A stretch of 64,000 nucleotides of DNA, from assembly GCA_964234715.1 (NCBI GenBank), contig OZ174282.1. The stretch is one strand, 5' to 3'. Shown here piece after piece: positions 6,965 through 63,444 of the stretch (positions are counted from its first letter, which is position 1; each line of letters starts with the position of its first letter). The notes under the pieces were generated by a model. The model made no database searches, was not told where the DNA came from, and saw only the letters and a program-made list of their open reading frames with translations. The stretch comes from Podarcis melisellensis. Lineage: Eukaryota. The position numbers and the translations under genes were made by a program.

Positions 6965-7033
6965 CTTGGCTTTGCGTTGGTGTCTTTCAGGAGTGAAGTC
7001 ACCAAGGTGAAGAATGAGCAGTTTTACCTGCTG

Positions 7034-7041
7034 TATTTATA
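7034..7041 (-). promoter_or_regulatory. TATA box (TATAAATA) of gene B
   Basis: Consensus TATA box about 70 nt upstream of the ATG at 6964 (context GCCAAGATG). Confidence 0.7.
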
Positions 7042-16099: not shown

Positions 16100-16604
16100 T
16101 GTGATGTAATAACATATTTTTTATTTTACGGCAAAGCAACCAGTGTTCACGAGTCTTCCCTTACCCTGGGTTACAGTAAAGACACCCAAAATCAACAGAA
16201 AAAACTACAATTAGCAGACCCCGGTTAAAAGGAAGTTGCGGTTCACATTATGAAACCTGATTGGTAATAAAGTTATGAAATTTGTAGAAGGAAAGCGTAG
16301 CGGCAGGCACTGAAGATTGTTCTCAGCTGATCCAGCTTGCCAATCTGAAAACGGCAATAAAAAACGAGTGAAATAAGGTTGGGTATTTCCTACATGTGCA
16401 TACATAAATTTCACCTTGTTTGCTATTTAATGACGCCAGCACAAGAACACCACATCAAGTGTTAACATAACAGGTGAGGCAGCTGCACTACACATTTGGA
16501 GCCTACGAGATGAATAAGATGCTTTTCTTTCACAGAGACTCAGGCTTAATTCCTCAACATCCTGACTAGGGAATGGGACTTGATGAACATGGCAGGAATT
16601 TCTT
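16100..16604 (-). other. Putative non-coding terminal exon of gene A with polyadenylation signal
   Basis: Acceptor TCTTGTTTCCTCAG ending at 16605; AATAAA on the minus strand at 16120-16125, followed by U-rich sequence. The 3' end is approximate. Confidence 0.45.
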
Positions 16605-17840
16605 CTGAGGAAACAAGATACAGGATTGCACTGCACTTTACCTGCATGGCTCTTCTTTTGAAACAGACTTATCTACATTTCCAAGTTACATTTTTTCACA
16701 TATCTGAAGAGACATGGGCATATGTGTTGTAAGATGCATATAAATATTTAGGGAGGCTGGACATAGCAGGAATAGCAGGCTGGTTTCGTGCATACATTTT
16801 TTGTTGCCTGAGGCAGAGCAGCAAATGGAATTGCTCCCCAATTCAAGATTTAAAGTACCCAACGATACCCACCTTAGGTAGAAAAATCATCCTAGTGTTT
16901 CCCTCTCCCTAATTCTGGTCTCTGGGACCAGAACTTGTTATTTTTTAAAAAAAAATAATGGATAAAACAAATGATCCCCAAATCAATACTTCTTCTTTGT
17001 CAATAATTCCTGTGGAAGTCAGTAGCTGGGAATCAGATATAAATTGTGTCTTGACAAGATTCAGAAATATAACTTTGCTATTGCTTTTTATATCATTATC
17101 TATTCAGGTTTGTGGGTGGAAATTAACTAGTGTTACTCTTATACGTATAAATATTTCCCTCTGTGTGTTAAAACATTGCTCTGCACAATGTTTAAGCCCC
17201 ACAGCACCTATGGACATGCAGTAAAAATTCAGGATCAGCAGGCTGTCATCTTGATATCAAACCTGACCCAAGAGGAGATGGATATGTGTAATAATATTAT
17301 TTCCATTAATTTCTTGCCCACCCTTCACCATGAAGTCCCTGGGTGGGTTACCACAACAAAAAATACAATATTTAAAAAGTTACAAGGAAATACAGACAAG
17401 AGAATATGGTACCATAGGTGGATGTTTTCTTATTAGGTTCACAACAGTATAACCCACCAGGTAGCATTTAGGATTCATGCCTAAATGCTTGATAGAAACT
17501 TCTGGTACAGAGAACAAAGTATGGCTAACAACAAATCTATGGTTTCTATTTGTTCTTTGGAGCTACAGCTATCTGAAATATGGGATCATCTTAAAATGGC
17601 ACCGAGAACTGATGCTCTGAACTAAAAGATTATTCTTCAACTCAAGTTTTGAAACATGCATATTGCAAAAAGCCATCTATATTAAGCAGCTGGTATTTCA
17701 CATTTTGCATTCCACTTCTTACATATATTGCCAATAGTCCTTTATACCCACACCCCAAGGTAACCCATATACGAACGTCTTTGGACAAACTAGCATAGTT
17801 TAGTCTCTCTTGGTGCGAAAGCAGCACCCTCTGTACTCAC

Positions 17841-17881
17841 CTGAGTGTATTTCCCAGGTTGAATGGTCAGGTTTATGGTGC
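17841..17881 (-). CDS. Gene A stop-containing exon (GCA CCA TAA plus 32 nt of 3' UTR)
   Basis: TTTTGTTTTTCCAG acceptor and CAG|GTGAGT donor; phase-0 reading gives A-P-stop (TAA at 17875-17873). Confidence 0.7.
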
Positions 17882-20800
17882 CTGGAAAAACAAAATGCAG
17901 GCAACCATCTCAGACCAAGTGCAAAACAACAAGAACGTTGATGCGCTTGAACTCACGGGGAAAAAATCATCATGTAATTGCTAGAAGGAGTGGGTGAGGG
18001 TGCATCATTAAGTCACTATTTTAGAATGCACTTGAAAAGATTAAGTAATAGGCTACTGAGGACATCAAGTGGATCCTACAAATGATTGCATCATGAAAAG
18101 GTACATGAAATACTCAAGCTAGGCTTTTGAGGAGGAATGGATAGGGCAATAAGGGCATGGACATATAAGCATGTTGTAAAACAGGGAAAGTACACATTAT
18201 AATAAGAAACAACTAGATCTGAGGAGAATCTGCTGTTTCTTTTTTGAGTGGGTGTCAGGAATCTTTCAGCAGGTGCTTCAGTTTGAAGGGGAAGTTTGCT
18301 TTTAAAAAGTCAAAGTATTTGGGTAGATTACAAGATCATTTTGAAATATCCATCTATTTCAAGCTTTAATTCATGAAGATTTAAAGAGAGCTTGAAACAG
18401 ACGGGTCCTTCAAAACACAAAACCTTATTTTGTACTGCAAAACACTTCTTTTCCGTATCCACTGCAGATGTAATATTAATAACTTCCTGCCCCACAGCAG
18501 AGCGGGGGTGATTGTGTTCACAATTACAGCTGCTGTGAATGGCCATTTTGTTCATCAGGTTTTATACTGAATCATTGCAGACTGTTCTTTTTTGCATTTC
18601 ATTGTCATGTGGCTATATTTCCCATATCCCCTTCCCCTTATTGTCACATATGTAACTGCCAACTGAAGATAACAGAGGTGCCAGGTTGCTCCCAAGTTTT
18701 AGGGGGGTCTGGGGTGCATCACGTGTGTGACATCTGGAGGAGCTGAGCACTGAAGCTGCCACACACCCACACACGTGCTGGGCCCCCTCAAACAAATATC
18801 AAGGGGGCTGCATTTGCTAAAGTGGAGTGACTCTAACCAGTGTGCCACAATTAATCTCAATAAACTACTACTATCCCAAGTTGATGTTATTATGCTCATA
18901 TTCACAGGGCTACTTGAACCATGAGCATCCAGTCTTCCAGCTTATGCTGTTAATAGCTGCACCTGCCAGCTCACCTAAGGGGTAACTGAGCCACATCCAG
19001 ATCACTTGTATCTCTTTGTTGGCTGCACAGTCCTTGCAGTTGGAAAGGAAAGTTGCTCTCCCAGTAAAAAACTGAAATTGTACTTCTGAAATTTAACTTT
19101 GTGTTCTCCGGAAAGTTACAATGGCTGTTCGCTGAAAGCTATAAAAGTGCATTGAACTGAGCTTTCCCCTGTATTACTGTACTTCAACGCTACATAAGAG
19201 GGTGAAGGAAAAAAACCCCAAACAAGTGCGCTTTCGTTTCGGAAATGATGAATAATGAAAAGAATGCACTCCCGTTTATGTCTAACTTGTTTCTAAGTGA
19301 AAGTATTGAAAACACATTAATTAATGGTTGAAATTAATTAAAACGATTCTGCTTCATTTCTGCCATTGCTTATTCATAGGAGGCATTCTTAAAACTGACA
19401 AGAAGCATTGCATTGTATTACTAAGAATGTTCTGTGGGGGGAACAGAGACCCTGAAGAACTCTGAAAGAGGCAAGACATAACACAACCGTAAAGCTGGTA
19501 TACTTCTTTTCCTGAGTAAGAAGACCAAACTTAGAGGATATAATTCCTGACCAATCACTAAATGCAAAAAACCTGAACATGATATATTTCTTTCACCTAT
19601 ATATGCAGCAATTTAAAAATTAAATATATACGTGGTAGCCAATAAGAAGTATAAAAATGATTAAATGAACTTATGTACATTTTAGTACAGTGCCTAATAA
19701 CAGAAATTGTTCTGAGCTCTAGCTGTGCTGACTGGGGCAAGACTGGCAGGGCTCAGGATTTGCTGGTACTACCAGCACAGATTCCCCCTTCCTCATTGGA
19801 CTGCTCAACCAGGATGAAAAATACTGCTTCTAGGAAATTAATACTCACAGGTTCCTGACTTTCAAAAGGTGGTGGAGGAGGCTGAAAGAGAAAAGGAAGG
19901 AAATGGTTCTATTTCAATGCAATGCAAGAGATGTAGAATCCTGTTTGTAGGAAATTAATACTCACAGATGGACTTCCGCCAGGTGGTGGAGGAGGCTGAA
20001 AGGAAAAAAGAAAGAAATGTTTCTATTTCAAAGCAATGCAAGAGACACAAAAATCCTGTTTGTAGGAAATTGATACTCACAGGTTGACTTCCGCCAGGTG
20101 GTGGTGGAGGCTGAAAGGGAAAAGGAAGGAAATGCTTCTGTTTCAAAACACTGCAAAATATTTAGAATACTGTTTGTAAGAAATTGATACTCACAGGTTG
20201 ACTTCCACCAGGAGGTGGTGGAGGCTGAAAGAGAAAGGAAGGAAATGCTTTTATTTCAAAAACAAGTTGAATGATGTAAAATCCTGTTTCTAGGAAATTG
20301 ATACTCACAGGTGGTGCATTTATTCCAGGTGATACCGAAGTCTGAAATAAAGGAATGGAGGAAACTTTTGCGTTCCAAAACCATTTCATGCATTTCACTT
20401 TCCAAACCACAAAGAGTCAGGGTGTGTTCACATTAGCACCTTAAATCATTTCACAGCAATTTCCATCTAGCTGTTGACATGAGCATGGCTTAGTGTCATA
20501 GGAATGGCTTAATCTAATGATCCTGAAACTCGTTTGAGAAACATTGCATCAAACGGCAATATTTCACAACAAATTACAGGGTGCCCATGCATTTAATATA
20601 ATGTAATGTGAATACAGAATAAAAAAAACCAGCACTGGAAATGAAGTAAATGAATGATAAATGGAAGTGTGGACACAGCCTCAAATTCTTTTATAAAGTG
20701 GATTTGTTGTGCTATAGAAAAAGAGGCCTTTAATGTACTTTAATTACTCTGAGCTAAAATTCCACTACATGCCTGAATCCCTCCTGTAAAATACTGACAG

Positions 20801-23800
20801 TCCAGAGGAACCTTTCACAAGACGTGAAATAGAAGGGAATGGGAATGCTTGCAAATCTGATTTGTAGGAAGTTAAGGTTGCAGCCAGCCTTCTTATTTGG
20901 CATTCAACCTGAACCATTTGCAGAAAATTCATGGGGAGGTTGGAAAACAACATCAGTTGCTTATTGGGAAAAACATGTAGAATCCTGCTTGTAGGAAATT
21001 AATACTCACAGGTTGATCATTTCCACTGGGTGGAGGAGGAGGCTGGAAGAGAAAAGGAAGAAAATGCTTCCATTTCAAAAACAATGCAAATGATGCAGAA
21101 TCTTGTTTCTAGGAAATTGATACTCACAGGTGGTCCATATCCTCCATATGGCAAGAGAGGCTGAAAGAGGGGGGGAAAGGGAAATATTTGCTTTTCAAAA
21201 CAATACAAAAGCTGTAAATTCCTGTTTGTAGGGAAATTAATACTCACAGGTTGCTGATTTTCACCAGCTGGTGAAGGCTGAAAGATAAAGGGAAAGAAAT
21301 ATTTATAGGTCATTCATTCCGATTTGTTTTCGGATAGGTAATAAAACATTGGGTCAAGCAAGTGTCACCCCACACTTTTTCTGTTACTTTCCTTATTGCA
21401 AAAAGTCCAGTTTGCAGAGCAGTGGGGGAAAGATTCCTCTGCAAGGGCATCAAATCAATTTGTGCCACCTGAACTTGTCAGTATGTGAGTGAGCCCCATT
21501 TAGCATTGGTCTGGAAGTAGCCTAATACTTACAGGCTGTCCATATCCTTGATATGGCTGAGGATCCTGAAAGAGAAAGGGAAGGAAATTCTTGTACAGTG
21601 GTACCTCTGGTTACGAATGCTTCGGGTTACGAAGGCCGCTAACCCAGAAGTAGCTGCTCCTGGTTGTGAACTTTGCCCCAGGATGCAAACAGAAATCACG
21701 CGCCAGAGGCGCACACGCAGCGGGAGACCCCATTAGCAAAAGCGCGCCTCAGGATAAGAACGGTTTCAGCTTAAGAACGGACCTCCGGAACGAATTAAGT
21801 TCGTAACCAGAGTACCACATGCAAATGATACTATGATACTATAACCAGAGTACCACATGCAAATGATACTATGATACTATGATACAAATGATACTATGGC
21901 AGACCAACACGGCTACCTATCTGTACATGCAAATGATGTAGAATCACACTGGTAGGAAAATAATACTCACTTGTGGTCCATATATTCCTACTGATACGGA
22001 AGACTGAAACAAAGAAGGAAGAAAACATTTACATTCCAACACAAAACACAAATACAAAATATTTTTTGTCGGAAATCAAGTACTCCTCCAGATGACTTAT
22101 TTATTGAATGTTCATCCTGATTTGCTTCTTCAAAGCTTTTGCAAACTGTGTCTGGCCTTTATTGAGCATTTGTTCTGATTTGTCTGTAGGGCAATTAAAT
22201 GATAATGAGCATTTGTCCTGCATTCATCCCAATTTGCTTGCTCCCCCCACCTTCCCATTAATAATTTTTTCATTGCATTTCACTTTCCACACCACAAAGA
22301 GTCAGGGTGTGTTCACATTACCACCTGAAAGCATTTCACAGCACTTTCCATCTAGCTGATAACATGAGCATAGCTTAGTGTCATAGGAATGGCTTAATCA
22401 AATTGTCCTGAAACCAGTTTGAGAAACAATACATCAAATGGTAATACAGAGGAACCTCAGTTTTTAAGTGTCTCTGAAGCCAAATGTTTCAGTTTTCGAA
22501 CGCTGAAAACCTGGAAGTAATTGCTTCCATTATCGAATGGCTTCCGAGGTGCGTTTCTCAATTTTCTCCATTGAAACTGCAGACCGCCCATTGTGCCTCA
22601 GTTGTCGAATGTTTCGGAAGTCAAATGGTCTTCCAGAATGGATTACGTTCAACACCCAAGGTTCCACTATATTTCACATTTCAAATTACAGGGTGCCCAT
22701 GCATTTAATATAATGTCATGTGTATATGGAATAAAAAACCAGCACTGGAAATGAAGTGAACGTATGATAAACAAAAGCGTGGCCACAGCCTCAAATTCTT
22801 TTATAAAGTGGATTTGTTGTGCTGTAGCAACAGATGCCTTTAATCTACTTTAATTGCTCTAAACTAAAGTTCTGCTATGTGCCTGAATCCCTCCTGTAAA
22901 ATACTGACACTCCAGAGGCACCCTAATACAGAAGAGGAGAAAGAGAAGGGGATGGGAATGATTGCAAAACTGATTTGTAAGAAGTTAAGGTTGCAGCCAG
23001 CCTCCTTATTTAACATTCAACCTGAACCATTTGCAGAAAATTTGTGGGGGGGTTGGAAAACAACATCAGTTGTTTATTGGACAAAACATGTAGAATCCTG
23101 CTTGTAGGAAATTAATACTCACAGGTTGGTCATTTCCACTGGGTGGAGGAGGAGGCTGGAAGAGAAAAGGAAGAAAATGCTTCCATTTCAAAAACAATGC
23201 AAATGATGCAGAATCTTGTTTCTAGGAAATTGATACTCACAGGTGGTCCATATCCTCCATATTGTGGGGGAGGCTGAAAGAGAAGGAAGGAATATTTGCT
23301 AGGCATTCGTTGTGATTTGTTTGCTGGGAGGTTATAAAATTGCGTGTCAAGCTAGTGTCATCCCACACTTTTCTTGTTACTGTACTTTCCTTATTGCAAA
23401 CAGTCGAATTTGCAAAGGGGCGGAGGAAGGAACGTTGTGCAAGGGCATCAAATCAATTTAACTGTTCATCCTGAACTTGTCGGTATGTGACTGAACCCCA
23501 TTCAAAAATAGCATCAATTTGGAAGTGGCCTAATACTTACAGGCTGTCCATATGCTGGATATGGCTGAGGACCCTGAAAAAGAAAGGGAAGAAAATGCTT
23601 GCATTCCAATACAATTAAAAAAGACTTTAAATCTTTTTCTAAGAAACTAATATTCACAGGCTGCCCATTTCCCTGATTTGGTGGGGGAGGAGGCTAAAAG
23701 AGAAAGGGAAGGAAATGTTTCTATTTCAAAAACAATGCAAATGATGTAAAATCATGTTGGTAGGAAAATAATACGCACAGGTTGTCCATATATTCCAAAT

Positions 23801-26800
23801 GATACCGAAGACTGAAAGAAAGAAGGAAGAAAACATTTGCATTCTAAACCAATACACAAATATAAAATACTTTTTGTAGGAAATCAAGTGCTTCTCCAGA
23901 TTACTTGTTTACTGAGTGTTCATCCTGATTTGCTTCTTCAAAGCTTTTGCGAACGGTGCCTGGCCTTTATTGAGCATTTGTTCTGATTTGTCCGTAGGGC
24001 AGTTAAATGATAATGAGCATTCATCCTGCATTTATCCTGGTTTGCTCCCCCCTCCCTTCATCTTCCCATTAATCATTTCTTCCTTGCATTTCACTTTCCA
24101 AACCACAAAGGGTCAGGGTGTGTTCACATTAGTACCTTAAAGCATTTCACAGCACTTTCCATCTAGCTGTTGACATGAGCACAGCTTAGTGTCATATGAA
24201 TGGCTTAATCCAATCATCCTGAAACTCGTTTGAGAAACAATGCATCAAACGGTAATATTTCACAACAATTTACAGGGTGCCCATGCATTTAATATATTGT
24301 CATGTGAATATGGAATTAAAAAAAACAGTACTGGAAATGCAGTGAATGTATGATCAATGGAAGTGTGGACATAGCCTCAAATTCTTTTATAAAGTGGATT
24401 TGTTGTCCTATAGCAACAGAGGGCAAAATTTAAAGAATCCTGCTCGTAGGAAATGAATACTCACAGGTTGATCATTTCCACTGGGTGGAGGAGGCTGGAA
24501 GAGAAAAGGAAGAAAATGCTTCCATTTCAAAAAAAACAATGCAAATCATGCAGTATCTTGTTTCTAGGAAACTGATACTCACAGGTGGTCCATATGGTCC
24601 ATATGGTGGCGGAGGCTGAAAGAGAAGGAAGGAATGTATGTTGGGCATTCATTATGGTTTGTTTGCTGGGAGGTTATAAAATAGTGTGTCAAGCTAGTGT
24701 CATCCCACGCTTTTCCTGTTACTTTCCTTATTGCAAGCAGTCCAATTCGCAGAAGGGTGGAGGAAGGAATGTTGTACAAGGGCTTCAAATCAGCTTTAAC
24801 TGTGCAACCTGAATTTGCTAGTTTGTGGGTGAGCCCCTTCCAAAAATAGCATCAGCCTTGAAGTGGCCTTATACTCACAGGCGGTCCATATCCTGGATAT
24901 GGCCGAGAACCCTGAAAGAGAAAGGAAAGTAAATGCTTGCATATAAAATAAAAAGACTTAAAATCTTGCTCTAAGAAACTAATACTCACAGGCTGTCCAT
25001 TTCCTTGATTTGGTGGCGGAGGAGCGGGCTAAATGAGAAAGGGAAGGAAATGCTTACATTTCAAAAAACAACCCAAATGATGTGAAATCCTGTTGGTAGT
25101 AAATTAATACTCACAGCATATAAATATACGGCTGCTCCTGGATTCTGCTGAGGTTGTTGGGGAGGCTGAAGAAGAAAAGGAAGGAACTGTTTGCATCATT
25201 TTCATTTCTGAGAAACTGGTGTATAAATTAAGGGTGCAGCTAAACCTATGGATTTTACCTCCATTTGTCTGCCGTTTGTTACTTACATGATAGGCCAAAC
25301 ATGCGGAAGGCAAGTCCCAATGAAATACGGCTATACTTGGTGTTCATAACATTTGTTTTGTACTATTTCAGATTCACTGTGTAGTCTCTGTGAACCCTGT
25401 TTTTTATATTTTTTTCATTTTCCTTTATTTCATATTCCTTACTGGATTGTTATTTTAGCTTCATAATAAAGTCTTGGTTTAAAAAAAAGATGATGCAATA
25501 ACAGCTTTTTAATGATGAGTTCTGTGAAGAACACGGGTATCATGCAAGAGTTTGTAAGGTGATGGGTTGCCCGTGACATGTACCAGAAAGTAGGGGGCAT
25601 ACTTGCTTAATAGAGTCAATTGGAGCATGTTATTCCAAATAAATATTTTAGGCAAGCCCAGTCTAAATATAAGCACCCAGAGAAATTTGGATTCCCCCGC
25701 TTCAGGGCTGGATTCCTTTGCCATATAACACACTTTTTACTCCAAAAATGAAATATCCTGAGACATGAGGAAGTGATGGATTGCTGCCTAACAAGTCCAA
25801 AGGCCTCTTAGGCACATGGAAATAACTTTTCAACTCTTTGGATCATGTGCAGCTCTATGGCTCTATGACTTATATATATGGTAGCTCACTTAGCTACCAT
25901 AGGATATGAAACAAGGCGGCAAACCAAATTTGTCATACTCACCTGTTGTTGGTAAGAACCAGCGTTACTCTACAGAAACAGTAATTTTAAAAGTTTTGTT
26001 AGTTTTCTAATAAACGTTTGTTTGTTTTATTTTTTTTTAAAGGCATGGCAGAAGTCCAGGCTTATATAGGCATTAGGCGCGTGTGTCAACCACAAGATAT
26101 GCCTTGTATCTTTGGGAAGCAGCTTGATCTGTTTCAGCGTCTTTATAATTCAACTTGGGATCAGGACCAAATACAGTCTGTTAAAAGCAAGGCCCAACTT
26201 TTCCCCATTCACTATAAAGTGGGACCTCAGGTTAAGAACTTAATTCGTTCCAGAGCTCTGTACTTAACCTGAAACTGTTCTTAACCTGAAGCATCACTTT
26301 AGCTAATGGGGCCTCCTGCTGCTACTGCACCGCCAGAGCACGATTTTTGTTCTCATCCTGAAGCAAAGTTCTTAACCTGAAGCACTATTTCTGGGTTAGC
26401 GGAGTCTGTAACCTGAAGCATATGTAACCTGAAGCGTATGTCACCCGAGGTACCACTGTAATAGGTGCTATAATAGGTGCTATAATTCACTATAATAGGC
26501 ACTATAATAGGGGAATCTAAAAACAGCTATGTTTGTATTTTCACCCCTTTTCAAGGCAGCAGATAGAATTTGCTAGCATATTGTAGGTGCACATGATCTG
26601 ACTCCATATAAGGCAGTGGTGGCCTCTTGAATGATCTTCTCATGGATAGGATAATTTTTTTAAAAAAAAAGAACTCCAACATTTTGTCCCTAACAGTGTA
26701 CATATAGTACATGTGAATTGGTCATAAGAAAAGTAATAAACAAAGAAACCAGGAGTTGTTTGTTGTGCTTTATGCACAAATGTTTACTTTAATGCAATTA

Positions 26801-29800: not shown

Positions 29801-29811
29801 CAGTACCAATC

Positions 29812-29863
<52 letters not shown>

Positions 29864-41800: not shown

Positions 41801-44800
41801 GGAGGAGGAGGAGGAGGAGGTTCCATTTCAACCTGCCTTCCTTCAAAAAGCTCAGGACAGGCTAACTAATCTTCCCTATTAATCATCATGTCAACCCTGT
41901 GAGGTAGACCCGGCTGCTCAAGAGGTCACACAGGGAATTTCCTAGCTGAGATTTGGACCCAGGTAATCTTGATACAAGTATTGGCATGCTACCTGCTAGA
42001 TGGGAGTGGCTCAAATAAACACACAATCTAACCTAATAGCCAACTTCACTTCTCTTTGTTTAGCTAACCTCTTTCTCAGCACTGAGATTGTATGAAAAAG
42101 CCAGAGAAAGAAGACTCTTCTCAATACTTACTTCTACACTGTTGATGAGCTCTTCCCACTAGGAAGGAAAGAGACACTGGTTATTCAAAGAGGCTACCTT
42201 CTCCCAGGAAAATCCAGCCAGTTCCCTGCCCAGTGCTTGCATCTGCTTCCCACTTGATGCCCTTCCCCCTGACAACCCCAGATTGCTTTGAGCTACCCAG
42301 ACAGGTCCACAGTCATCCAGGCCTATCTCAGCCCAACTCAAGCAACTCCCAGTTCCTCTTGAATTGATTCAGGACTCAGCTGCGCCTGGTGCACAGACCT
42401 AAACATCCGTTTGAGACCCGGCACAAGGAGAATTCGCAAATTCATGTAAATAAAGGTTATTTACCCATGCATCAACACTCTGTCCACCGTCATCCTAGAA
42501 AAATAAAATTCAAAATGTCATCTGGTCTTGTTTGTTTCTGCATCAGAAATGAAACTGCTTAGGTGCCCTGAACCTTAAACACAGTCTTATTCTTGGAAAC
42601 AATCCCTATGCATATTAAACATGCTTGTTGGTTTCAGGTAGATCTATTTAGGAGTTGTAGCTGACATGGAATCCCTCAAGCAATATTTCACCACCCCTAG
42701 GTTTCAGGTTTGGGGCCTGAAGTCTCAGGGTCTGGGATATTCTGGCCTGGCAACCCAGTGGATCACTGAAGAAGAAGAAGAGTTTGGATTTGATATCCCG
42801 CCTTTCACTCCCTTTAAGGAGACTCAAAGCGGCTAACATTCTCCTTTCCCTTCCTCCCCCACAACAAACACTCTGTGTGGTGAGTGGGGATGAGAGACTT
42901 CAAAGAAGTGTGACTGGCCCAAGGTCACCCAGCAGCTGCATGTGGAGGAGCGGAGACGTGAACCCGGTTCCCCAGATTACGAGACTACCGCTCTTAACCA
43001 CTACACCACACTGATTGGTGAGCCTATATAACTGACCCTTGCCCAAAGCTTTGGGCTGGGGTCCTAGGCAGCACTTGTTTGGACAGAAGGATGACATGGA
43101 AATTGGTAGGACTAGGGTCAGACGGCTCACAAGGTTTCTATGAAAAGATAGGGAAGACAGAAAAAGACTTCTCATACTCACTGAGCCAGGGTAGCCATTT
43201 TGGGGGGGAGGAGGAGGAGGGTAAGGACGAGCCCCTGGACTGCCAGAGTAGCCAGAGCCCTGCTACAGAAAGAAAGAAAGAATTGTTGATTTTGTTTCCA
43301 CAAACTTCTTTTTAGAAAACAAATGGCACCTCCTCTTCCCAGCTTTTAAAATATTAGTGATGGGGTGTTTGTGTATATACACACACACACACATATGTAT
43401 AAAACGTGTTTGGATGCATGAGAGAAACGCATCTTCCTCCCTCTTATTGTAATTTATACTCTTTCCCTTTTCGAATTAAAAAGAAGCCTGTTCACAGAAA
43501 CCCAAGTTGTTGCAGGTGTCCCATGACACTCAATCATTGGTGGACAGGTGTGCTTCCACCTGTGCCAAGGATAGGGAAGCTGTGGTCCTCCCAATTTTGT
43601 TGGCCTCTCACTTCTGGCAGCCCCATTCAGGATGCCCAATGGCCAGGGATGATGGGGCTTACAGTGGGCAACACTTGGGTGACTGCAGATTCTCCAAAGA
43701 GATTGGTTTATTACCAAACCATTACAGCAAAGAGGGCCCAGTGGGGATGGGGAACCTGTGACCTCGGGGTGTTGTTTGACTCCAACTCCCATCAGCCCAA
43801 GCCAGCATGCAGAAGTGGCTTGTGAGTGGTGGGGTGAAGGCAGTGGCAGTACTGTGCTTGTTGGGTGAGGCGAGACGAGGCAAGGCAGCACGGCTGGGAG
43901 ACGCCTGGCTTTGCTGTTGACCATGGCCAACCCAAACGTCCCCTGACGTTGCCAACACATTTCCCTTGCCCATCCCTGTTCCAACAAGCCCAGCTTTTGA
44001 GTTAATCTGGTCAGGAAAAGCAGGGTATAAATGTTTTGGATGGTAAATAAATAACCCAGTCCCTATTCCCATTAGGGAGGATTTGTAGTTCAGGATAGGC
44101 AAATCTGTCAATATCAGCTTGTCATTTTTTGAAACTTCGGTTCTGAACATTTGCAATTTTCGAAAAAGTCCTCGTGGAAATGAATCAGTATTTTAGTGCT
44201 CCGAATATTCACGTTTGCGTACAATTTTGCTTATCAGAATGTATTTTGTGTCGTGTTTTCACTAATCTATGCGTTTCTAAGGAGGCATCAGCTCAGCCCA
44301 GAGCACACCGATTCCCACTGCACAAATTTCATTCCTGCACAAGGAATATATTCTCAAGCAGATTCTTCTGGACTTGGGGGGGAAAGGGGAAATTGTTAAT
44401 GTCAGTCAGAAAGCTCCACCTTCCAAGAAAATCGAGCAAGAGCTCGTGAGTGTATCCACCCAGCTGAAATAAGTTAAAATGGGGATATTACACAAGGAGG
44501 CCAAAGAAGTGGTCATACTCACGGGGCCAGGGGAGCCAACGTACAAGCCCACCTGCTACGAAAATTAAAAGATAAATTCACTGATCCTGCTTTCTCCCAC
44601 AGCAATCAGAACTGAATATATGGGCACGCCTTCCCTAAGGTTTGCAAGCTGCCTAGAGGTTTTACGACAATCAAAAGAGTCCTATAAACATTGTGAAATA
44701 AAAATAAATAAATATGGTGGGGTGAGGAACTTATCACCACAGAGGGCCAAATATTCCCATGGGGGGGCGGGTTTCAGGGTCCACAGGTCAAACCCTGGAC

Positions 44801-44979
44801 TGGTGTCCTGGGTTTAGTTTCGGGCTAGATGACAAACAATAGGGTGAAGTTGAATCCTGAGAAGATGGAGGCCTTGTAGGCTTGTACTCCCTTGGAAGAA
44901 CAGTCTTGTGGGCTTAGAGTAAACCTGGATCCAATACTGTTACTGGAGACCTCAGTGGCAGCTCCTCACCTTGGAATGC

Positions 44980-45028
<49 letters not shown>

Positions 45029-48000
45029 TAAATTTGTATGCCACCCTATGCTTGCAAGTCTCAGGGCGGTTCTCAACATAAAATCACAATATAAAAACAC
45101 AAAACACATAATCAAAATAAAAAGAAGAACAACCCAATAATCTCCCCTCCCTGACACATTTTAAAAGGAAGGCTCCCCTGGCACCGTTATTAATATCACA
45201 CAGGTGACATTTGAGAACTGATAGCAAAGAGAGGGAAGACCACCTCGCAAGTCTGCTGCAGCTGCACTTCCTGACCACCCTGAACCATGAACTACTAAAC
45301 TGGGCCACATAATCTGATGGCCCATATGAAAGAACTTAGAAGAGTTTCTCATACTTACTGGGGGAGGTTGAGGCTGCCAAGGTTGGGCTTGGACACCAAG
45401 ATAGGCCTGAAAAAGACCAAGATACGTAAGCAAGTTGCTCAGTCCTGTCTCTTGCCCACCAGACATCACCACTACAGAAGCACAATGGAAACCAAGCAGA
45501 ACCACAGCAAGTATTGACGAGCCAAGTCCAGGTCCTTAAAAAACTGGGGCCAGCCACTGTCAGCACTGGCACATCCATACAATGACAGGGAGCCGCAAAC
45601 AGCTATAATTCAGCATGAAGTGTGCTCTGGAGCCAGGGTTGGCCCAAGACATTTCGCCACCTGAGCCAAACCACAAGATGGCAACCCTTTGGGCCACCGC
45701 CATAATTCTGGAAAAGATGAAGACGCACAGTTCTGGCCTGACACACATCTCCATAAACTGCTCCTGAATACCAGTTGCTGGAAACTATGGGAGGGAAGAG
45801 GGCTCTTGAGCTCAGATCCTGCTTGTAGGTTTCCCACAGGCATCTGGTGAGAACAGGATGCTGGAGTAGAGGGGCAGGCTCTTCCCAGGGTCTTCTTGTT
45901 AGGGACCTTGGAGAGGAATTGGTGCTCTTCTAGACAGATAGACTCTGCGCCTAGGGAGTGTGGTGTTAGTCCTTTAAGAGGTTTATTATATTTCAAATGG
46001 AAGCCTGCCGTGCAGTTTATGCAGGAGGCTGTTGCTCAGCTAGAGGCAGACTGCATGTGTGAGTTATGCGTGAGGCAGCTAGCACAGAACAGGGCCGTGT
46101 TTAGATAAACATTATAACCACCCTTTGGTTGTTAAATAAATGAAACAACACTATACGGAGGAAATGTGACATCTGTCTACTGGTGCATCTGAGATAACAT
46201 CATGGGCAGAACTTTGGTAACTGTAACTTGAAGAACTTGTGCTTGAGCTTGCTTTTCCCTCATCCCTCCCCAGTCCTCTTTCCTCATGTGCCATGGCTTT
46301 TTATTTTTTATTTTTTTATATATATAAATGTTATTGGTTTTTTAACATATCATTTTCAACAGTAATTAAACATACTTTTACATCTTATTCAATTTTTTTT
46401 GACTTCCATCAGTCCTGTCTGAAAATTTTCCAATCTAATCTCTTAGTATGCATTTCTTACTTTCCCTGTTACATTTCAAACTCATAACCAATATCTCTAT
46501 CTTTTTCTACTTTGTAACACTTCATATATTTCTCCTTACAAAACTTCTTGTAGTCCTACTAGCGTAATTTGTTGATTACAGTTGCTCTTCAAATAATTCA
46601 TCTACTTCTTCCCATCTTCTGTAAATCTCTGGTCTTTTTAGATTGTCTTTAGATTGCCATGTCTTTTTAGATTGTGAGTCTGGGGGCAAGGATTGCCTTT
46701 GAAGGAGATTTCTGCACGTCACTCTTTTTGACTTAAAGCTGGGGGTATCAGTGCCTTGGATACATTGTAAATTCACCAAATAAGCAGGGAAACCTGGAGC
46801 ACCTGTGTGGGTTTCGTTTTGGCCATGCCCACCACTGGCATGCGGTCCTCAGAGGGCTGATGAACAGGGAATGTGGCCCTCACACGCAAAAAGGTCTGTG
46901 AACTCTGTTTTAAGCATCCTTACATAGTTCCGCTCCATTTAAAATGAGTTTCCAAGCTTAATTCAAAGTGCTACTCTTATCCTTAAAAGTGCTAACCCAA
47001 ATACCTGCTTGCCTGCCTTCTCTTGTATCAACTGAGATTGTCACCTTAGGCGTTTCTCCGGACAACCCCTCCATCTGAAGTGTGGTGGGTGGAGACCAGA
47101 GAGAGAACCTTTTTGATGGTGACTCCCTGCCTTCTCCAGGGAAGCCCTCCTGGTGCCTTCATTACCATTATTACCAAAAACTCTGAAGAACTAAGAGAGC
47201 GAAGAGAGGGATACAAGTGAAGGCTGCCTCAGAGTCCGCTCCAGCTGATTTCTCAATGCTCAGTTTCTGAGCCATGTACTACTAAGTGATATCTAAACCA
47301 AGCCGCATAGTCTAACACCCCATATCAAAGAACCTAGAATCTTCCAAAGCATAGTTTCTCATACTTACTGGGGGAGGTTGAGGCTGCCAAGGTTGGGCTT
47401 GGACACCGAGATAGGCCTGAAAAAGACCAAGATACGTAAGCAAGTTGTTCCGTTCTGTCTCTTGCCCACCAGACATCACCACTGCAGAAGCACAATGAAA
47501 CCAAGCAGAACCACAGCACGTATTGACAGGCCAAGTCCAGGTCCTTAAAAAACTGGGGCCAGCCACTGTCTGGCGCATCCATGCAATGACAGGGAGCCGC
47601 AAACAGCTATAATTGAGCATGAAGTGCGCTCTGGAGCCAGGGTCGGCCCAAGACATTTTGCCACCAGAGCCAAACCACAAAATGGCCCACCAGGGAAGAA
47701 GGGGTGGGTGAAGAGCGACATGACAAGCAAGGGAGAAATAAAGATCTACATCAGGAACAAGAGGGGAGTAAAGATTGGGAAGGAGGTGGGGAATCAAATC
47801 AGCCTTGGGAAAGGTCGTTCTCCAGGTTCCCCCTCCATCTGCAGTGTGGTGGCTGGAGGTCAGAGAGAAAACCTTTTCAGTAGCTATCAGAAGGTGTATA
47901 AACTGAGCGAAATTGTCTGATACCCTGAAGCGTCCAAGGTAGCGTTTCTCATACTTACCGAATTTTGGCCATCGTAAGGACCCTGAAAAAGATTGAGATG

Positions 48001-48083
48001 CATAGCTTATTTGTCACACTCACATCTTCACAATGAAATTACAGTGATGCCAAGCAGAACCACCAAGTGAAGACGAGAGAGAC

Positions 48084-48159
<76 letters not shown>

Positions 48160-50950
48160 TTTTCAGTGGTGGCTCCCTGTCTCAGAATGCCCTCCCTGTT
48201 CAAATATTATTCAAAAAATTTTTTTGCATAAACGTGCATCCTCAACATTACAAAATTAAGGCTGCATAAACGTACATCCCCAACACCACTCAAGAACTCT
48301 GGAAACTGTAATTTACCCTCCACAGAGCTACAATTCCCAGAACCCAGAACATACTTCAATTCCCAAGATTTGGGGGTTGTGTGAGCTTTAAATTTGCTTT
48401 ATATGCATGGTGTATAAGCAATCTAAGAGAACAGAATGAAGACAGAGACCACCTCAGACCTTGCTCCAGCTGCACCCTCTAATAAACACCCTCCCCTGAA
48501 TAAGGTACTACCAATTTATATATTGAGCTATGTAGCTTAATACCCCATAGCACAGTCACAATAACCCGAAGAAAACTTTCTCATACTTACTGGAGGAGGA
48601 GGCTGAGGCTGAGGTGGGGGAGGTACATTTGGGCCCGAATAAGTAACCTGTAAAAGATCAAGAGAGAAAGGTGGTTCAGTCCTTTTTGTTGCCCATCTCA
48701 CATCCTCACAACAAAACCCAAAATCAGTGTGGGTAAGCTTGCTGCTGAGATTTGCAGGAAATTCCATCCCTATCTATAGCCCTTGGCTGCCTCCACGTGG
48801 AAATTTATTTGCACATAAACTGATCGTTCCAGGAAAAGCCCTTTCCAGGAGGAAAATAAAAGCTTAGGCAGGTCCAGTGCTTTTGATAGGATCCTGTAAG
48901 CTGATAATCCCTGCCTGGGGTGTGAAGAGGTGGAATGCCTTCTTTTAAAATCAAAATATAAAATGAATTTTATTTTTCATGAAAACCCACAAGCGGGGCA
49001 TGAGTGCAACACTTCCAGCCCACTCTTCTCCCCAGCATGAGGATGCTTCACTCTGTGCATAGCTGAAGCATGGAATTTGCTAGCACAGAATGTAGTGCTG
49101 GTTAGAAGCTTGGATGGCTTTAAAAGGGGAGTTAGACAAATTCGTGGAGGGCCAAGGCTTCTGTGACTACTAGCCACAAGGGCTGTGTACTGCCTTCAGT
49201 TGTTGGGCATCACAAGTATGGAGAGTTGCTGTTGTACTCAATGCGCTGCTTTGGAGCTTCTCAAAGACATCTGATCTGCCACTGTGAGAACAGGATGCTG
49301 GAGTAGATGGGTCTTTGGCTGATCAAGTAAGACCCTGGAAGAAGATGGCTAATTCTAGCCCAGAACAGGACTGGTCCTGTTAAACAAGTGAGGGTGTTTT
49401 GTCGCAGATCCTACTCGCGTAGCATCCTTTTTGAGAGAAAGCATAACAAAAGCAGATGGACAAAATGTGTCGTACTTACGGAGGCACCAAAACCAGGATT
49501 CCACTGTGATAACAAAACAATTGAAACGATGCTGTTAGTTTCCATGAATTTAATTTGAAATAGACTCTGGGACATAAGCCATTCTTTGCAAGCAGGATTC
49601 ACAGTACGATCCTATTCATTCCTATTTGGAGTCAAAAGTAACTTCCATTGAGTTCAATGGGACTTACGCCCTGGTAAGTGCACATAGGAGTTCTGCCTTA
49701 GTTACTCTCTTATATCCGAGTACGAAAAGGTTTGTTGTGTTCGCTGGAAGCACTGTATGTGGACTCAAGCCCTGTCCGCAATCGGGAGACATTAACAAAC
49801 GGGAAAACAAGGTTTTAACCCAAAGCTCCCCACTTCTATCTGAAGAAGTGTGCATGCACACGAAAGCTCATACCAAGAACTAACTTAGTTGGTCTTTAAG
49901 GTGCTATTGGAAGGATTTTTTTTTTGTTTTGACTATGGCAGACCAACACGGCTACCTATCTGTAACTCCCCACTTCAGACAGTCACCTTCCATGTTGCAA
50001 GGAGTGGGGACGAAATTCAGCTCAGTTGTATTTAAAAGCAAACCATCCTAATCTGCCCTTTCCAAAACAATGCGCAAACTGAAATGCAGTCACCATTCCA
50101 AATTACCAGCCAGGGAATGTGTACAAACATGCATGCACAATACCAGGGTAAAGTGTGAGCATTAGTGAAAATAGCATACAGAATGTATTACATTAAGGTG
50201 TACTGCCTTGCAGAAATGTGTCTATTAGGGGAAATTGCATGCAAACATGTAAAATCTAGGAGGAATTCGTAACGAAATGCTGATGAATTTTCAGAATTAC
50301 ATCTTTCTTTAATGCAATCTACTTGGAGAACTGAGCTAAAGAGAAATGAGAAACTGGGATAAGCCAACTAACACAGCAATTGCGGGGGGGGGTGTGTGTG
50401 CAGAGTTAGCACACTGGCCCCCACTGCTTCTTCTTACAAGCAAAATGCCCTCTCAAAACTCTCTGGTTTTTATAAACAGTGCCTTGACTTCCATCACTGA
50501 AGGAAGGCACAGGTATCTACTAATTATTTTGGCAAACTGTTTGTTCGCTATGTATTTGGACACTTCTTAAGCTACCATAACTAAATCTTGCATGATGGTT
50601 CCTGAGATCAAGGAGCAGGTTTTCATCTATGTTTGCACCAGATGACATTTTGAATCAAGAGGGCAAACTGAACCTTTAAAAACTGTCCTGATTTTAACCA
50701 CTAGTTTCATTTTTTTATTTTTTTATAATTCCCGAGCAATGCTGGATAAAGGGCTTCTGGTCAATAAATAACATGACACTTTTGATTCACATTGGTTTAG
50801 GTCCCCCACTCCACCTCCCCCCACTAGCATCCAATTAAAAGCTGATGCTGCATTTCTCCTAGAAGTCCGTTTCCATCTCACCTGTGCATCCGTTTCTCTT
50901 GCACAAAGTGCAGAGATTAAAAGAACGGCGGCTACAACCGGGAGCTTCAT
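17873..50950 (-). CDS. Gene A: secreted Pro/Gln/Gly/Tyr-rich protein encoded by 42 coding exons, mostly phase-0 microexons (~468 aa if all are included)
   Basis: Exons read manually; each internal exon has a pyrimidine tract+AG, a GT donor and a length divisible by 3. In transcript order: 50882-50950 MKLPVVAAVLLISALCARETDAQ; 49480-49503 WNPGFGAS; 48591-48647 VTYSGPNVPPPPQPQPPPP; 47959-47982 GPYDGQNS; 47369-47416 and 45359-45406 AYLGVQAQPWQPQPPP; 44523-44555 QVGLYVGSPGP; 43182-43262 QGSGYSGSPGARPYPPPPPPQNGYPGS; 42465-42494 DDGGQSVDAW; 42132-42158 WEELINSVE; 40940-40963 NEFGGRRQ; 40440-40469 SSSKQSSPGL; 39322-39354 LAGIFGGSRKQ; 38315-38341 SSSNRNQGW; 36743-36760 LQDFTP; 33263-33283 TDDSPNW; 31340-31363 MKRLFEMP; 29950-29973 MELVERVK; 28913-28942 EAFSRKNSQN; 27023-27049 NNRYQWPFQ; 25943-25969 SNAGSYQQQ; 20 Pro-rich exons between 25165 and 19849; 17841-17881 AP-stop. 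No in-frame stop occurs before the last coding exon. Confidence 0.85.
19849..25165 (-). CDS. Gene A Pro-rich microexon array (20 exons, 30-51 nt)
   Basis: 25115-25165 PPQQPQQNPGAAVYLYA; 24990-25028 PAPPPPNQGNGQP; 24879-24911 GSRPYPGYGPP; 24583-24615 PPPPYGPYGPP; 24465-24494 PPPPSGNDQP; 23779-23811 SSVSFGIYGQP; 23658-23693 PPPPPNQGNGQP; 23541-23573 GPQPYPAYGQP; 23241-23273 PPPQYGGYGPP; 23123-23155 PPPPPSGNDQP; 21971-22003 SSVSVGIYGPQ; 21533-21565 DPQPYQGYGQP; 21248-21277 PSPAGENQQP; 21128-21160 PLLPYGGYGPP; 21010-21042 PPPPPSGNDQP; 20309-20341 TSVSPGINAPP; 20195-20224 and 20081-20110 PPPPPGGSQP; 19966-19995 PPPPPGGSPS; 19849-19881 PPPPPFESQEP. Donors are mostly GTGAGTAT/GTAAGTAT; acceptors TTTCAG/TTCCAG/TTTTAG-like. 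Confidence 0.87.
21596..21818. mobile_element. Tc1/mariner-pogo-type MITE
   Basis: TA-CAGTGGTACCTCTGGTTACGAA ... TTCGTAACCAGAGTACCAC inverted termini; right end damaged. Confidence 0.75.
22447..22670. mobile_element. Tc1/mariner-pogo-type MITE (diverged)
   Basis: TACAGAGGAACCTC...AAGGTTCCACTATA; absent from the paralogous intron copies at ~20560 and ~24255. Confidence 0.65.
26217..26458. mobile_element. Tc1/mariner-pogo-type MITE (same family as 33793 and 41413)
   Basis: Internal TAACCTGAAGC repeats; ends GAGGTACCACTG-TA. Confidence 0.75.
26808..26936 (+). mobile_element. Penelope-like retroelement terminal fragment
   Basis: CTGAAGAAGTGTGCATGCACACGAAAGCTCATACC...CAACACGGCTACC; a near-identical copy lies at 49838-49966. 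Family call from memory. Confidence 0.55.
27240..27920 (+). mobile_element. Degraded L2 LINE 3' region
   Basis: Frameshifted homology to the reverse complement of 62100-62700; ends in AATAAATAA. Confidence 0.6.
29815..29861. repeat. (CA)n microsatellite
   Basis: Direct observation. Confidence 0.95.
30509..31026 (+). mobile_element. Solo LTR in a gene A intron
   Basis: TGTG...CACA termini, 5-bp TSD TGGTT (30504-30508 and 31027-31031), internal CCAAT, TATAAAA (30601) and AATAAA (~30876). Confidence 0.8.
32812..33140 (+). mobile_element. Sauria SINE (5' truncated)
   Basis: Core CTCCTGCCAACCTAGCAGTTCGAAAGCA...GTAGATAAATAGGTAC and TTTACCT tail. Confidence 0.85.
33793..34034. mobile_element. Tc1/mariner-pogo-type MITE
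   Basis: TA-flanked; CAGTGATACCTCAGGTTA...TAACCCGAGGTACCAGTG. Confidence 0.8.
34162..34413. mobile_element. Tc1/mariner-pogo-type MITE
   Basis: TA TSD; TIRs CAGTGGTGCCTCGCAAGACGAA / TTCGTCTTGCGAGGTACCACTG. Confidence 0.85.
35352..35610. mobile_element. Tc1/mariner-type MITE
   Basis: TA TSD; TIRs CCGTATTTTTTGCTCTATAAGAC / GTCTTATAGAGCAAAAAATATGG. Confidence 0.8.
35671..35897. mobile_element. Tc1/mariner-pogo-type MITE
   Basis: TA-CAGCCGTACCTTG...CAAGGCACGACTG-TA; a related copy lies at ~53874-54101. Confidence 0.75.
37275..37513 (-). mobile_element. tRNA-derived MIR/CORE-like squamate SINE
   Basis: Close paralogue at 42768-43012; tRNA-like head (GTGGTTAAGAG...GGTTC) and (TTC)n tail on the minus strand. 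Confidence 0.7.
38996..39128 (+). mobile_element. tRNA-derived SINE with CR1-like tail
   Basis: A box TAGCTGAGCTGGTTAGAGC, B box GTTTGATCCC, then CTTCCAGCTCTACAATTCTATGATTCTA. Confidence 0.65.
41248..41820 (+). mobile_element. RTE-clade LINE 3' fragment interrupted by a MITE (41413-41649)
   Basis: Degenerate RTE C-terminal coding sequence (WETLACERSSWR..., then a Cys/His motif ending RIGLHSHLRTH), (GAA)n/(GGA)n tail; nested TA-flanked CAGTGGTACCTC...GAGGTACCACTG element. Confidence 0.7.
42768..43012 (-). mobile_element. tRNA-derived MIR/CORE-like squamate SINE
   Basis: Paralogue of 37275-37513. Confidence 0.7.
44981..45028. repeat. (TTA)n microsatellite at an L2-like tail
   Basis: Direct observation; the adjacent 45030-45165 resembles the reverse complement of 15530-15675. 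Confidence 0.85.
45343..47690. repeat. Direct duplication (~45343-45690 and ~47353-47690) carrying gene A exons 5 and 6
   Basis: Highly similar sequence at ~2010-bp offset; the two exons differ by one synonymous base (CTT/CTC). Confidence 0.9.
48080..48157. repeat. (GA)n microsatellite
   Basis: Direct observation. Confidence 0.95.
49838..49966 (+). mobile_element. Penelope-like retroelement terminal fragment
   Basis: Near-identical to 26808-26936. Confidence 0.55.
50882..50950 (-). CDS. Gene A exon 1: signal peptide MKLPVVAAVLLISALCARETDAQ
   Basis: Basic N-terminus, hydrophobic core and small-residue cleavage region; AAAATG start context; ends CAG|GTGAGA (phase 0). Confidence 0.88.
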
Positions 50951-51022
50951 TTTAGCCCGGGATCAGGCTTCCGTCCCGGGTGCGAAATCGTTCAAAGGTG
51001 TGAACTGTGGCTCGGAAGCTGT

Positions 51023-51030
51023 TATTTATT
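51023..51030 (-). promoter_or_regulatory. TATA-like box (AATAAATA) of gene A
   Basis: About 73 nt upstream of the ATG, the same spacing as the TATAAATA of gene B. Confidence 0.5.
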
Positions 51031-51345
51031 GACCCATCACCACAAGCCACACTGCCTAAACTTAAAGGGTCCATTGAGAGTGTCGCCAAATTACCTTATC
51101 TGGAAGGAAAGGTCAGAGGAACTGATTCATCACAGGGACACTCTTGCGGAAAGGACACCCTGCTTCCAGAGCCAACTGCTACGTGGACTCTTAAATGCCC
51201 CTGTAATGGAATATTAATCTCTCTTCAACAACCACATTTGGATCCCTTAATATTTTTACTTCATTATGTGGGACAGATACTTTTTGTTGGTTTTCAAGAC
51301 CATGTTTAATGCATTTTAACCACAGCATAGTTAATACCTGCAAAA

Positions 51346-63375: not shown

Positions 63376-63444
63376 CAAAAAGAGCAGGTGATGTCACAAG
63401 GCTGTCAGTCCTGAACTGCAGGGAAGAGAGACCCACTCGGGGAA

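Follow-up and report, generated by a model that had tools for sequence, protein, structure and literature searches.

The 64,000 nucleotides (nt) of Podarcis melisellensis DNA analyzed here (GenBank assembly GCA_964234715.1, contig OZ174282.1; hereafter the window) are vertebrate DNA without runs of N, and carry on the minus strand a microexon gene, termed gene A, which is real and whose architecture is kept across squamate families. Very probably it is one highly expressed protein-coding gene of 40 exons that spans ~34.9 kb, from ~51.0 kb to 16.1 kb, and the junction peptide LFEMP-MELVER maps to this strand. Its coding sequence of 1323 nt (441 residues) makes up 3.8% of the 35-kb locus and is distributed over a signal-peptide exon, an Ala-Pro-stop exon and 37 internal exons that were recovered without selection for frame. 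These internal exons measure 18-81 nt (median 33 nt, with 31 of the 37 at or below 36 nt), and every one of them is open, in phase 0 and of a length divisible by three; being symmetrical, they carry 94% of the coding sequence, and all 38 coding junctions in the model fall at phase 0, 10 of them confirmed via spliced contigs. The original prediction, made from the letters of the sequence, had listed 40 such internal exons with AG/GT borders; 37 were found again and the other three could not be reproduced, whereas the two flanking exons are present as it had described them.

Splice signals, transcripts and gene ends

The exon chain can be recovered without reference to reading frame. When intronic bases alone were scored between 16 and 51.1 kb, and each strong acceptor was paired with the nearest strong donor, the minus strand gave 39 pairs (30 divisible by three, 29 open) vs. 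8 on the plus strand (4 divisible by three, 1 open), and for the donor heptamer GTRAGTA the count is 46 on the minus strand vs. 5 on the plus strand. In a separate test, the top-scoring AG within 130 nt upstream of each GTRAGTA donor was taken as its acceptor, with the in-frame, open share of all AGs in that stretch serving as the null. In the non-repeated part of the gene (25.2-50.8 kb) 14 of 16 donors had a chosen AG that gave an open, in-frame exon (null 0.27, binomial P=8e-7); in the repeated part 18 of 18 did. The worry that accompanied the original prediction, namely that in-frame candidates had been favored in picking exons, is thereby answered: the chain is no selection artefact. Single weak candidates may nonetheless be spurious, and chance in-frame candidates do occur, as the stretch 17980-17957 is in frame and open yet is bypassed in the main spliced form of the RNA contigs. 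An interspersed element present as two intronic copies (42863-42935 and 37329-37438, minus strand; translation LLGDLG(P/L)VTLL...) yields false splice-site pairs.

Reads and contigs were placed on 16060-22050, where X1 and X2 derive from two different organisms and X10 is a DNA run. Contigs of X1 and X2 have CT..AC joints (plus strand), which read GT..AG on the gene strand, and between 16344 and 21971 these coincide exactly with 11 predicted borders. The intron inside the 3' untranslated region (UTR), joined at 16344/17841, and the junction 17881/19849 appear in X1 (depth 5800-8400) as well as in X2; spliced contigs further join 19881/19966, 19995/20081, 20110/20195, 20224/20309, 20341/21010, 21277/21533 and 21565/21971, together with 21042/21248, between which sits the version of exon 21160-21128 from the contig's own species. 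Exon depth is 4000-8400 in X1 vs. 8-20 for introns, and 114 vs. 4-15 in X2; in the spliced contigs exons are covered ~300 times as deeply as introns. The DNA run X10 gave one contig over 16060-20314, with 3 differences and none of the splice joints. The 3' third of gene A, comprising its last 12 exons, is spliced in the predicted way and, in at least one sample, is abundant, and the predicted exons E2-E28 are supported by sequence signals and cross-species architecture. Joints that appear to go back along the gene are near-identical exons of cassettes I and II (see below), which lie beyond 16060-22050, placed on cassette III. One X2 contig passes from an E21-like exon through E22 to the S-rich exon without the PPPPSGNDQP exon; exon skipping could account for this, but the exons are paralogous and X2 is from another species, and a difference in copy number between species explains it equally well. 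In X6, from a third organism, a contig of depth 11 links the last 3' UTR exon (16344-16109) to an exon at 16728-16642 with donor CAG/gtaaag on the minus strand; this joint is an alternative or an unrelated low-level transcript.

Transcription of gene A would start at a conserved TATA promoter. The putative promoter occupies 51022..51116 on the minus strand, with the TATA-like AATAAATA at 51029-51022, ~75 nt ahead of the ATG, and upstream conserved blocks TGACCTTT, GATAAG, CAAT and GGCTTG, all defined by alignment of four squamates and of gene B, a paralogue described below. Exon 1 would then consist of a short 5' UTR and a classical signal peptide, the latter encoded at 50950-50882 (minus strand; ATG to MKLPVVAAVLLISALCARETDAQ), where the exon ends in phase 0 before a gtgaga donor; orthologous exons exist in three other squamate loci (L001, L003 and L004), in line with the signal peptide originally called. 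At the 3' end, the 41-nt penultimate exon (17841..17881) reads GCA CCA TAA (Ala-Pro-stop) followed by 32 nt of 3' UTR and gtgagtac, its borders being seen in the joints of X1 and X2, and the last exon (16112..16344) is 3' UTR throughout. The limit for nonsense-mediated decay lies at a stop ~50-55 nt upstream of the last junction; as the stop of gene A lies 32 nt ahead of the last exon junction, its 3' UTR intron should escape this decay. The same 3' layout recurs in Phrynocephalus (ag/GCT TAG, 34 nt, gtgagt). An AATAAA hexamer stands at 16125-16120, and contigs end at 16112 and 16109, 8-11 nt past it.

Exon modules, repeat growth and predicted product

A typical exon of gene A is preceded by a pyrimidine tract with a YAG acceptor and followed by a GTRAGT(A) donor close to the consensus; all exons below are on the minus strand. 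The predicted N-terminal module opens with E2 (24 nt, 49480..49503, WNPGFGAS), which resembles the second exon of Phrynocephalus (GNPSYG..), followed by two exons from the splice-signal scan, E3 (57 nt, 48591..48647, VTYSGPNVPPPPQPQPPPP) and E4 (24 nt, 47959..47982, GPYDGQNS). E5 (47369..47416) and E6 (45359..45406), each of 48 nt and encoding AYLGVQAQPWQPQPPP, belong to duplicate units that are 95% alike. E7 (44523..44555, QVGLYVGSPGP) and the largest exon, E8 (43182..43262, QGSGYSGSPGARPYPPPPPPQNGYPGS), both have tandem tagcag acceptors 3 nt apart, such that E7 would be 33 or 30 nt and E8 81 or 78 nt in length, with the frame kept in either case. The central non-Pro module is opened by E9 (27 nt, 42132..42158, WEELINSVE) and continues with the less certain E10 (24 nt, 40940..40963, NEFGGRRQ), with E11 (33 nt, 39322..39354, LAGIFGGSRKQ), for which a rival acceptor at 39347 would disrupt the frame, with the smallest exon, E12 (18 nt, 36743..36760, LQDFTP), and with E13 (27 nt, 34832..34858, FGWFGRRKQ), whose donor gtatga is weaker; F/W-rich exons like E13 are also present in Phrynocephalus (FDIFGWVG) and Sceloporus (VSFFNWLP). 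E14 (24 nt, 31340..31363, MKRLFEMP) again comes from the splice-signal scan and shares with E9 and E12 similar intron flanks that include the motif ctctttgaataa. E15 (24 nt, 29950..29973, MELVERVK) and E16 (30 nt, 28913..28942, EAFSRKNSQN) are placed by their splice signals, and E17 (27 nt, 27023..27049, NNRYQWPFQ) and E18 (27 nt, 25943..25969, SNAGSYQQQ) are less certain.

From 25.2 to 19.8 kb, the minus strand repeats a unit that consists of a pyrimidine tract, cag, a CCT-rich exon of 30-39 nt (51 nt in E19), gtgagtat and a spacer; mini-introns within cassettes are often ~80-88 nt, and other introns are 263-1119 nt. In self-comparison, E19-E38 and their flanking introns form one duplicate family, with cassette copies 86-92% identical and spaced 1.3-2.1 kb apart, and the order within the 5-exon cassette is an S-rich exon, PPPPPNQGNGQP, xPQPYxxYGQP, PPPxYGxYGPP and PPPPPSGNDQP. 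Cassette I (24465..25165), an 85.6% repeat of cassette II over 710 nt, comprises E19 (51 nt, 25165-25115, PPQQPQQNPGAAVYLYA), E20 (39 nt, 25028-24990, PAPPPPNQGNGQP), E21 (33 nt, 24911-24879, GSRPYPGYGPP), E22 (33 nt, 24615-24583, PPPPYGPYGPP) and E23 (30 nt, 24494-24465, PPPPSGNDQP). Cassette II (23123..23811), found by splice scan and self-comparison, comprises E24 (23811-23779, SSVSFGIYGQP), E25 (36 nt, 23693-23658, PPPPPNQGNGQP), E26 (23573-23541, GPQPYPAYGQP), E27 (23273-23241, PPPQYGGYGPP) and E28 (23155-23123, PPPPPSGNDQP). Cassette III (21010..22003), placed by joints in spliced contigs, comprises E29 (22003-21971, SSVSVGIYGPQ), E30 (21565-21533, DPQPYQGYGQP), E31 (30 nt, 21277-21248, PSPAGENQQP), E32 (21160-21128, PLLPYGGYGPP) and E33 (21042-21010, PPPPPSGNDQP). 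A very high-copy interspersed repeat lies in the E29-E30 intron at 21594-21925, the spot where cassette III is without the PPPPPNQGNGQP exon; its summed contig depth in the DNA run is 1.6 million, and many loose contig ends fall at 21594, 21812, 21893 and 21925. Cassette IV (19849..20341), with mini-introns of 84-85 nt and all junctions in an X2 contig of depth 114, comprises E34 (20341-20309, TSVSPGINAPP), E35 (20224-20195, PPPPPGGSQP), E36 (20110-20081, PPPPPGGSQP), E37 (19995-19966, PPPPPGGSPS) and E38 (19881-19849, PPPPPFESQEP); Tandem Repeats Finder reports a period of 114 nt in 4.4 copies at 19813-20312.

These repeats make a mechanism of growth visible, in that 114-nt exon-plus-intron units are nested within a 5-exon cassette, and gene A grew by tandem duplication of such frame-neutral units at both scales. 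As each unit is frame-neutral, units would be free to be gained, lost or skipped. Between paralogous cassettes exons diverge by 9-18% and introns by 9-16%, and the two exon indels are both of 3 nt; since exons diverge much as introns do and indels are of 3 nt, it appears to be the frame and the splice signals that are constrained, not the exact sequence.

The product of gene A has the Pro/Gln/Gly/Tyr-rich composition that had been described (P 28%, G 13%, Q 11%, S 8% and Y 6%), with few Lys or Arg residues, and its sole cysteine lies within the signal peptide. It would be a secreted, intrinsically disordered protein of ~420 residues in three modules: the N-terminal one is P/Q/Y-rich, the central one is short, with a high share of Phe/Trp and basic residues, and the C-terminal one is a long array of decapeptide exons of the types PPPPPxGxxQP and PxxYGxYGxP. 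The disorder originally proposed is probable in light of the Atlas model of the Phrynocephalus orthologue (P0112, see below), which has a pLDDT of 0.47. A collagen-like G-X-Y reading was ruled out, as G-X-Y runs are absent from the gene strand. From composition and abundance, the product may be made in bulk by one specialized secretory tissue, as a protein of the extracellular matrix or as a coating or lubricant, and the composition is comparable to that of salivary proline-rich proteins and P/Q-rich SCPPs. Identification of the expressing tissue could reveal a major unrecognized component of squamate secretion or matrix.

Neighborhood, orthologues and a tandem paralogue

Gene A lies head-to-head with, and 8 kb from, an upstream homologue of “uncharacterized protein C8orf90,” recognized in a plus-strand open reading frame at 59752-60303 (coding exon 59422-60306) that is 84% identical to the Hemicordylus capensis protein, 82% to those of Sceloporus and Heteronotia, 80% to that of Pantherophis and 78% to that of Anolis. 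In squamate loci C8orf90 is followed by a basic helix-loop-helix (bHLH) gene, and in hare a Maestro HEAT-repeat gene fills the head-to-head position beside C8orf90. At 57024-57316 a further conserved block, either non-coding or 5', matches Sceloporus and Heteronotia. Among the long open reading frames of the window, Pfam recognized a reverse transcriptase alone (RVT_1, E 1e-29; minus strand, 62663-63436), a fragment that is probably the remnant of a long interspersed element.

In Sceloporus, Pantherophis and Phrynocephalus, too, the C8orf90 homologue has an orthologue of gene A beside it. In Sceloporus a signal-peptide exon (MELPFVMVILMASVICTGAQ, then gt) stands at the matching place, and the symmetrical exons downstream of it are P/Y-rich or F/W-rich and have GTGAGTA donors; the Pantherophis locus, which covers ~0.9 kb of the gene, has its signal-peptide exon (MKLSFAGAALLISVLCTLAQ, then gt) at the matching place; and Phrynocephalus shows matching features with the signal peptide MKLLFGAAVLVVSALCVDAQ, again before gt. 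Promoter and exon 1 can be aligned in all four squamates, with TGACCTTT, GATAAG, CAAT, GGCTTG and a TATA-like ATAAA invariant, and blastn matches window positions 51041-51116 to 7609-7692 of the Sceloporus locus (L001), a sequence that includes a run of N. Within this region, the block CTGACCTTTCC...GATAAG (51086-51116) is kept in four species (L001, L003, L004 and the window), and its TGACCTTT part occurs also in gene B at 7120-7150; the block contains a nuclear-receptor half-site sequence (AAAGGTCA, other strand) adjoining the GATA site, and both are candidate sites.

The gene had been expected to be hidden from gene finders, and indeed the Sceloporus and Pantherophis annotations show no gene call at the orthologous position; with 3.8% of a 35-kb locus coding and exons of ~33 nt, gene callers miss it, so that an abundant transcript has been overlooked. 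In Phrynocephalus, a search with a single 31-residue exon led to an annotated product of 216 residues, P0112 (“hypothetical protein JRQ81_011570”). Its layout consists of a signal peptide, a P/Y-rich part, FDIFGWVG/NLLESIFSRL, a P-rich part, tandem PPLLTSAPNxGE exons and A-stop, and thereby mirrors the three-part layout of gene A; GTRAGTA donors in that locus number 18 on the gene strand vs. 2 on the other. When P0112 was compared with the window by tblastn, the signal-peptide exon alone aligned (61% over 23 residues) and the mature parts were unalignable. A search of 5.8 billion clusters returned no relative of P0112 other than itself and it has no Pfam family, in line with the earlier remark that the protein was not recognized. 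The literature searched, on squamate microexon or proline-rich genes, lizard SCPP genes and lizard uterus or eggshell transcripts, held no matching account. Gene A is also lineage-restricted, as had been proposed: it is present in three other squamates, and in a limited test no signal-peptide exon was found within 10 kb upstream of C8orf90 in gecko, tortoise or alligator. The locus offers a tractable case in which lizard families keep the regulatory and splicing scaffold but have protein sequences that can hardly be aligned.

A tandem paralogue, gene B, occupies 125-7041 on the minus strand, 9 kb downstream of gene A, and extends past the window edge. Its signal-peptide exon (MHLQVVTTALLVFLLCPDGSIS, then gt) lies at 6964-6899 with a TATA box at 7040, and its promoter blocks and signal-peptide pattern align with those of gene A, which identifies it as a paralogue. 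Downstream exons are of 18-30 nt and encode LGGLLG (4056-4039), GAGSRR (3012-2995), GGGLLG (1615-1598 and 142-125) and GLTDGLTGGT (964-935), all on the minus strand. An orthologue of the gene B promoter lies, without a gene call, 6 kb downstream of the Phrynocephalus gene (L008, 32636-36416), where the microexons are of charged composition (KKHGKGDHGPDDE, LKKKPGKHDNSDSDE and EQRGPKGPRGGGR); as these are charged, the mature sequence of gene B appears to be wholly different between lizard families. Gene A and gene B would together form a small squamate family, head-to-head with the C8orf90 homologue.

Alternative readings and known systems

Several points weigh against one gene of 40 exons with a secreted product. 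The read evidence is confined to 16060-22050, and the link of E1-E28 to the 3' part is a predicted one; the RNA label of X1 and X2 is itself a program's guess. The acceptors of E2, E7, E10 and E18 are weak and that of E17 is aag, which makes these the least certain exons. The signal peptide was assessed by eye and by conservation. Further, since exon divergence between cassettes is close to intron divergence, purifying selection on the repeat sequence itself is not seen.

The alternative that survives best, although it is unlikely, is that gene A belongs to the P/Q-rich SCPP genes (the lineage of casein, ODAM and amelotin) but has diverged and been translocated, and that it acts in mineralized tissue or in a derived secretion. 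In the SCPP family all coding-region introns are in phase 0 (PMC7807025). Gene A shares this property and is P/Q-rich, and the nearest named Atlas feature cluster of P0112 is Enamelin, albeit at 0.76, which is below the meaningful range. Caseins and several P/Q-rich SCPP genes have the stop before a 3' UTR intron and an untranslated last exon, a layout that is found in gene A as well. However, SCPP genes lie in a cluster descended from SPARCL1 (human 4q13-q22 equivalents), whereas in the 64 kb viewed the neighbor of gene A is C8orf90, which in squamate loci is followed by a bHLH gene; this neighborhood, with the Maestro HEAT-repeat gene beside C8orf90 in hare, indicates a human chromosome 8-type region rather than the 4q SCPP clusters. 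Because translocated SCPP genes exist (AMEL), such a location lowers the case for membership rather than removing it. SCPP genes are further expected to have a non-coding exon 1, the signal peptide and ~2 residues in exon 2, and an SxE (FAM20C) motif just after the signal peptide. In gene A there is no good acceptor between the TATA-like box and the ATG, and in four species as well as in gene B the box stands ~75 nt upstream of the start codon, which suggests that, unlike in SCPP genes, the first exon is coding. In addition, SxE is absent from the first exons past the signal peptide, E2 and E3 (WNPGFGAS, VTYSGPN..), and is confined to E9 (SVE) and E38 (SQE), and no sequence similarity to SCPPs was detectable in the P0112 searches. 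The likeness to SCPP genes and schistosome micro-exon genes (MEGs) drawn in the original prediction thus holds for the all-phase-0 architecture, but with SCPP synteny missing and the exon-1 rule apparently not followed it amounts to analogy.

Slightly less probable again is that the 35 kb contain at least two transcription units, an N-terminal and central gene and a separately started transcript of the P/G/Y array. The reads cover the last 12 exons only, and central introns of 2.5-3.5 kb could hide a promoter. However, the minus strand from 51 to 16 kb showed no other convincing signal-peptide exon with a donor (one weak candidate lies at 45288-45202), the frame is unbroken across all exons to a single stop, and the annotated Phrynocephalus gene unites the same three module types in one product; from these observations we infer a single transcription unit that runs from exon 1 to the poly(A) site. 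It is more doubtful still that gene A is chiefly a precursor of small amidated peptides, cut at central GRR, GSRK and RRK sites, with the Pro-rich parts as spacers. NEFGGRRQ, LAGIFGGSRKQ and FGWFGRRKQ do have basic pairs after a Gly, as is usual at sites of convertase cleavage and amidation, but the central part in Phrynocephalus (FDIFGWVG NLLESIFSRL RNLRFSHPRVGG) is without a dibasic pair and ~80% of the protein is Pro-rich repeat. That the exon chain is a chance result of choosing in-frame AG..GT stretches can be dismissed for practical purposes, for although 35 kb give on the order of a thousand open in-frame candidates, of which 17980-17957 looks good and is unused in the main spliced form, the frame-blind statistics, the strand asymmetry, the spliced contigs and the conservation in three other species contradict it, and for the 3' third the spliced contigs refute it.

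With gene A taken as a single secreted-protein gene, a broader proposal may be offered, tentatively, as an attractive possibility that falls somewhat short of being the expected outcome. Squamates would possess a previously undescribed vertebrate micro-exon gene family of SCPP-independent origin, with at least two tandem genes beside C8orf90, in which conservation is limited to promoter, signal peptide, exon phase and the terminal “A-stop” exon. The mature protein would be rebuilt in each lineage via turnover of exon-plus-mini-intron cassettes, possibly along with frame-neutral skipping, and would be a major lineage-specific secretion.

Among known systems, the P/Q-rich SCPP genes (caseins, ODAM, AMTN, SCPPPQ1 and the enamel matrix genes) resemble gene A in their secreted, disordered, P/Q-rich products, phase-0 coding introns, many small exons, growth by exon duplication and tandem paralogues. 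Gene A differs from them in its neighborhood, which is that of C8orf90 and not the SPARCL1/4q cluster, in a signal peptide apparently carried by exon 1, in the absence of an early SxE, in exons that are far more numerous and smaller (37 internal, median 33 nt), and in that no sequence similarity was found. The defining trait of MEGs is their “very small symmetrical exons”; they also have a signal peptide in every case and have been said to be restricted to platyhelminths (PMC4350168). The coding sequence of gene A is likewise mostly held in very small symmetrical exons and begins with a signal peptide, and as in schistosome MEGs a signal-peptide exon and a terminal exon bracket the small exons, the secreted products evolve fast, and the genes occur in local families. 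MEGs are, however, platyhelminth genes of unrelated sequence, whose pools of exon-skipping isoforms are documented; the host here being a lizard, gene A is not a MEG by descent, and the resemblance is an analogy only. It nevertheless extends to a vertebrate an extreme micro-exon architecture that the literature had deemed peculiar to flatworm secreted proteins. The mammalian salivary proline-rich proteins (PRB/PRH) share the Pro/Gly/Gln-dominated composition and have tandem decapeptide-like repeats akin to PPPPPGGSQP. Their genes hold the repeats within one large exon, whereas in gene A each repeat is its own exon with a mini-intron, and Tyr-rich YGxYG units and a hydrophobic central module are added. 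Finally, tropoelastin and other cassette-exon matrix genes, which the GGLLG exons of gene B also recall, are like gene A in having dozens of short, one-phase, frame-neutral exons and a repetitive Gly/Pro-rich extracellular product; elastin exons, however, split codons rather than lying in phase 0, and the alternating cross-linking Lys/Ala exons of elastin are absent from gene A.

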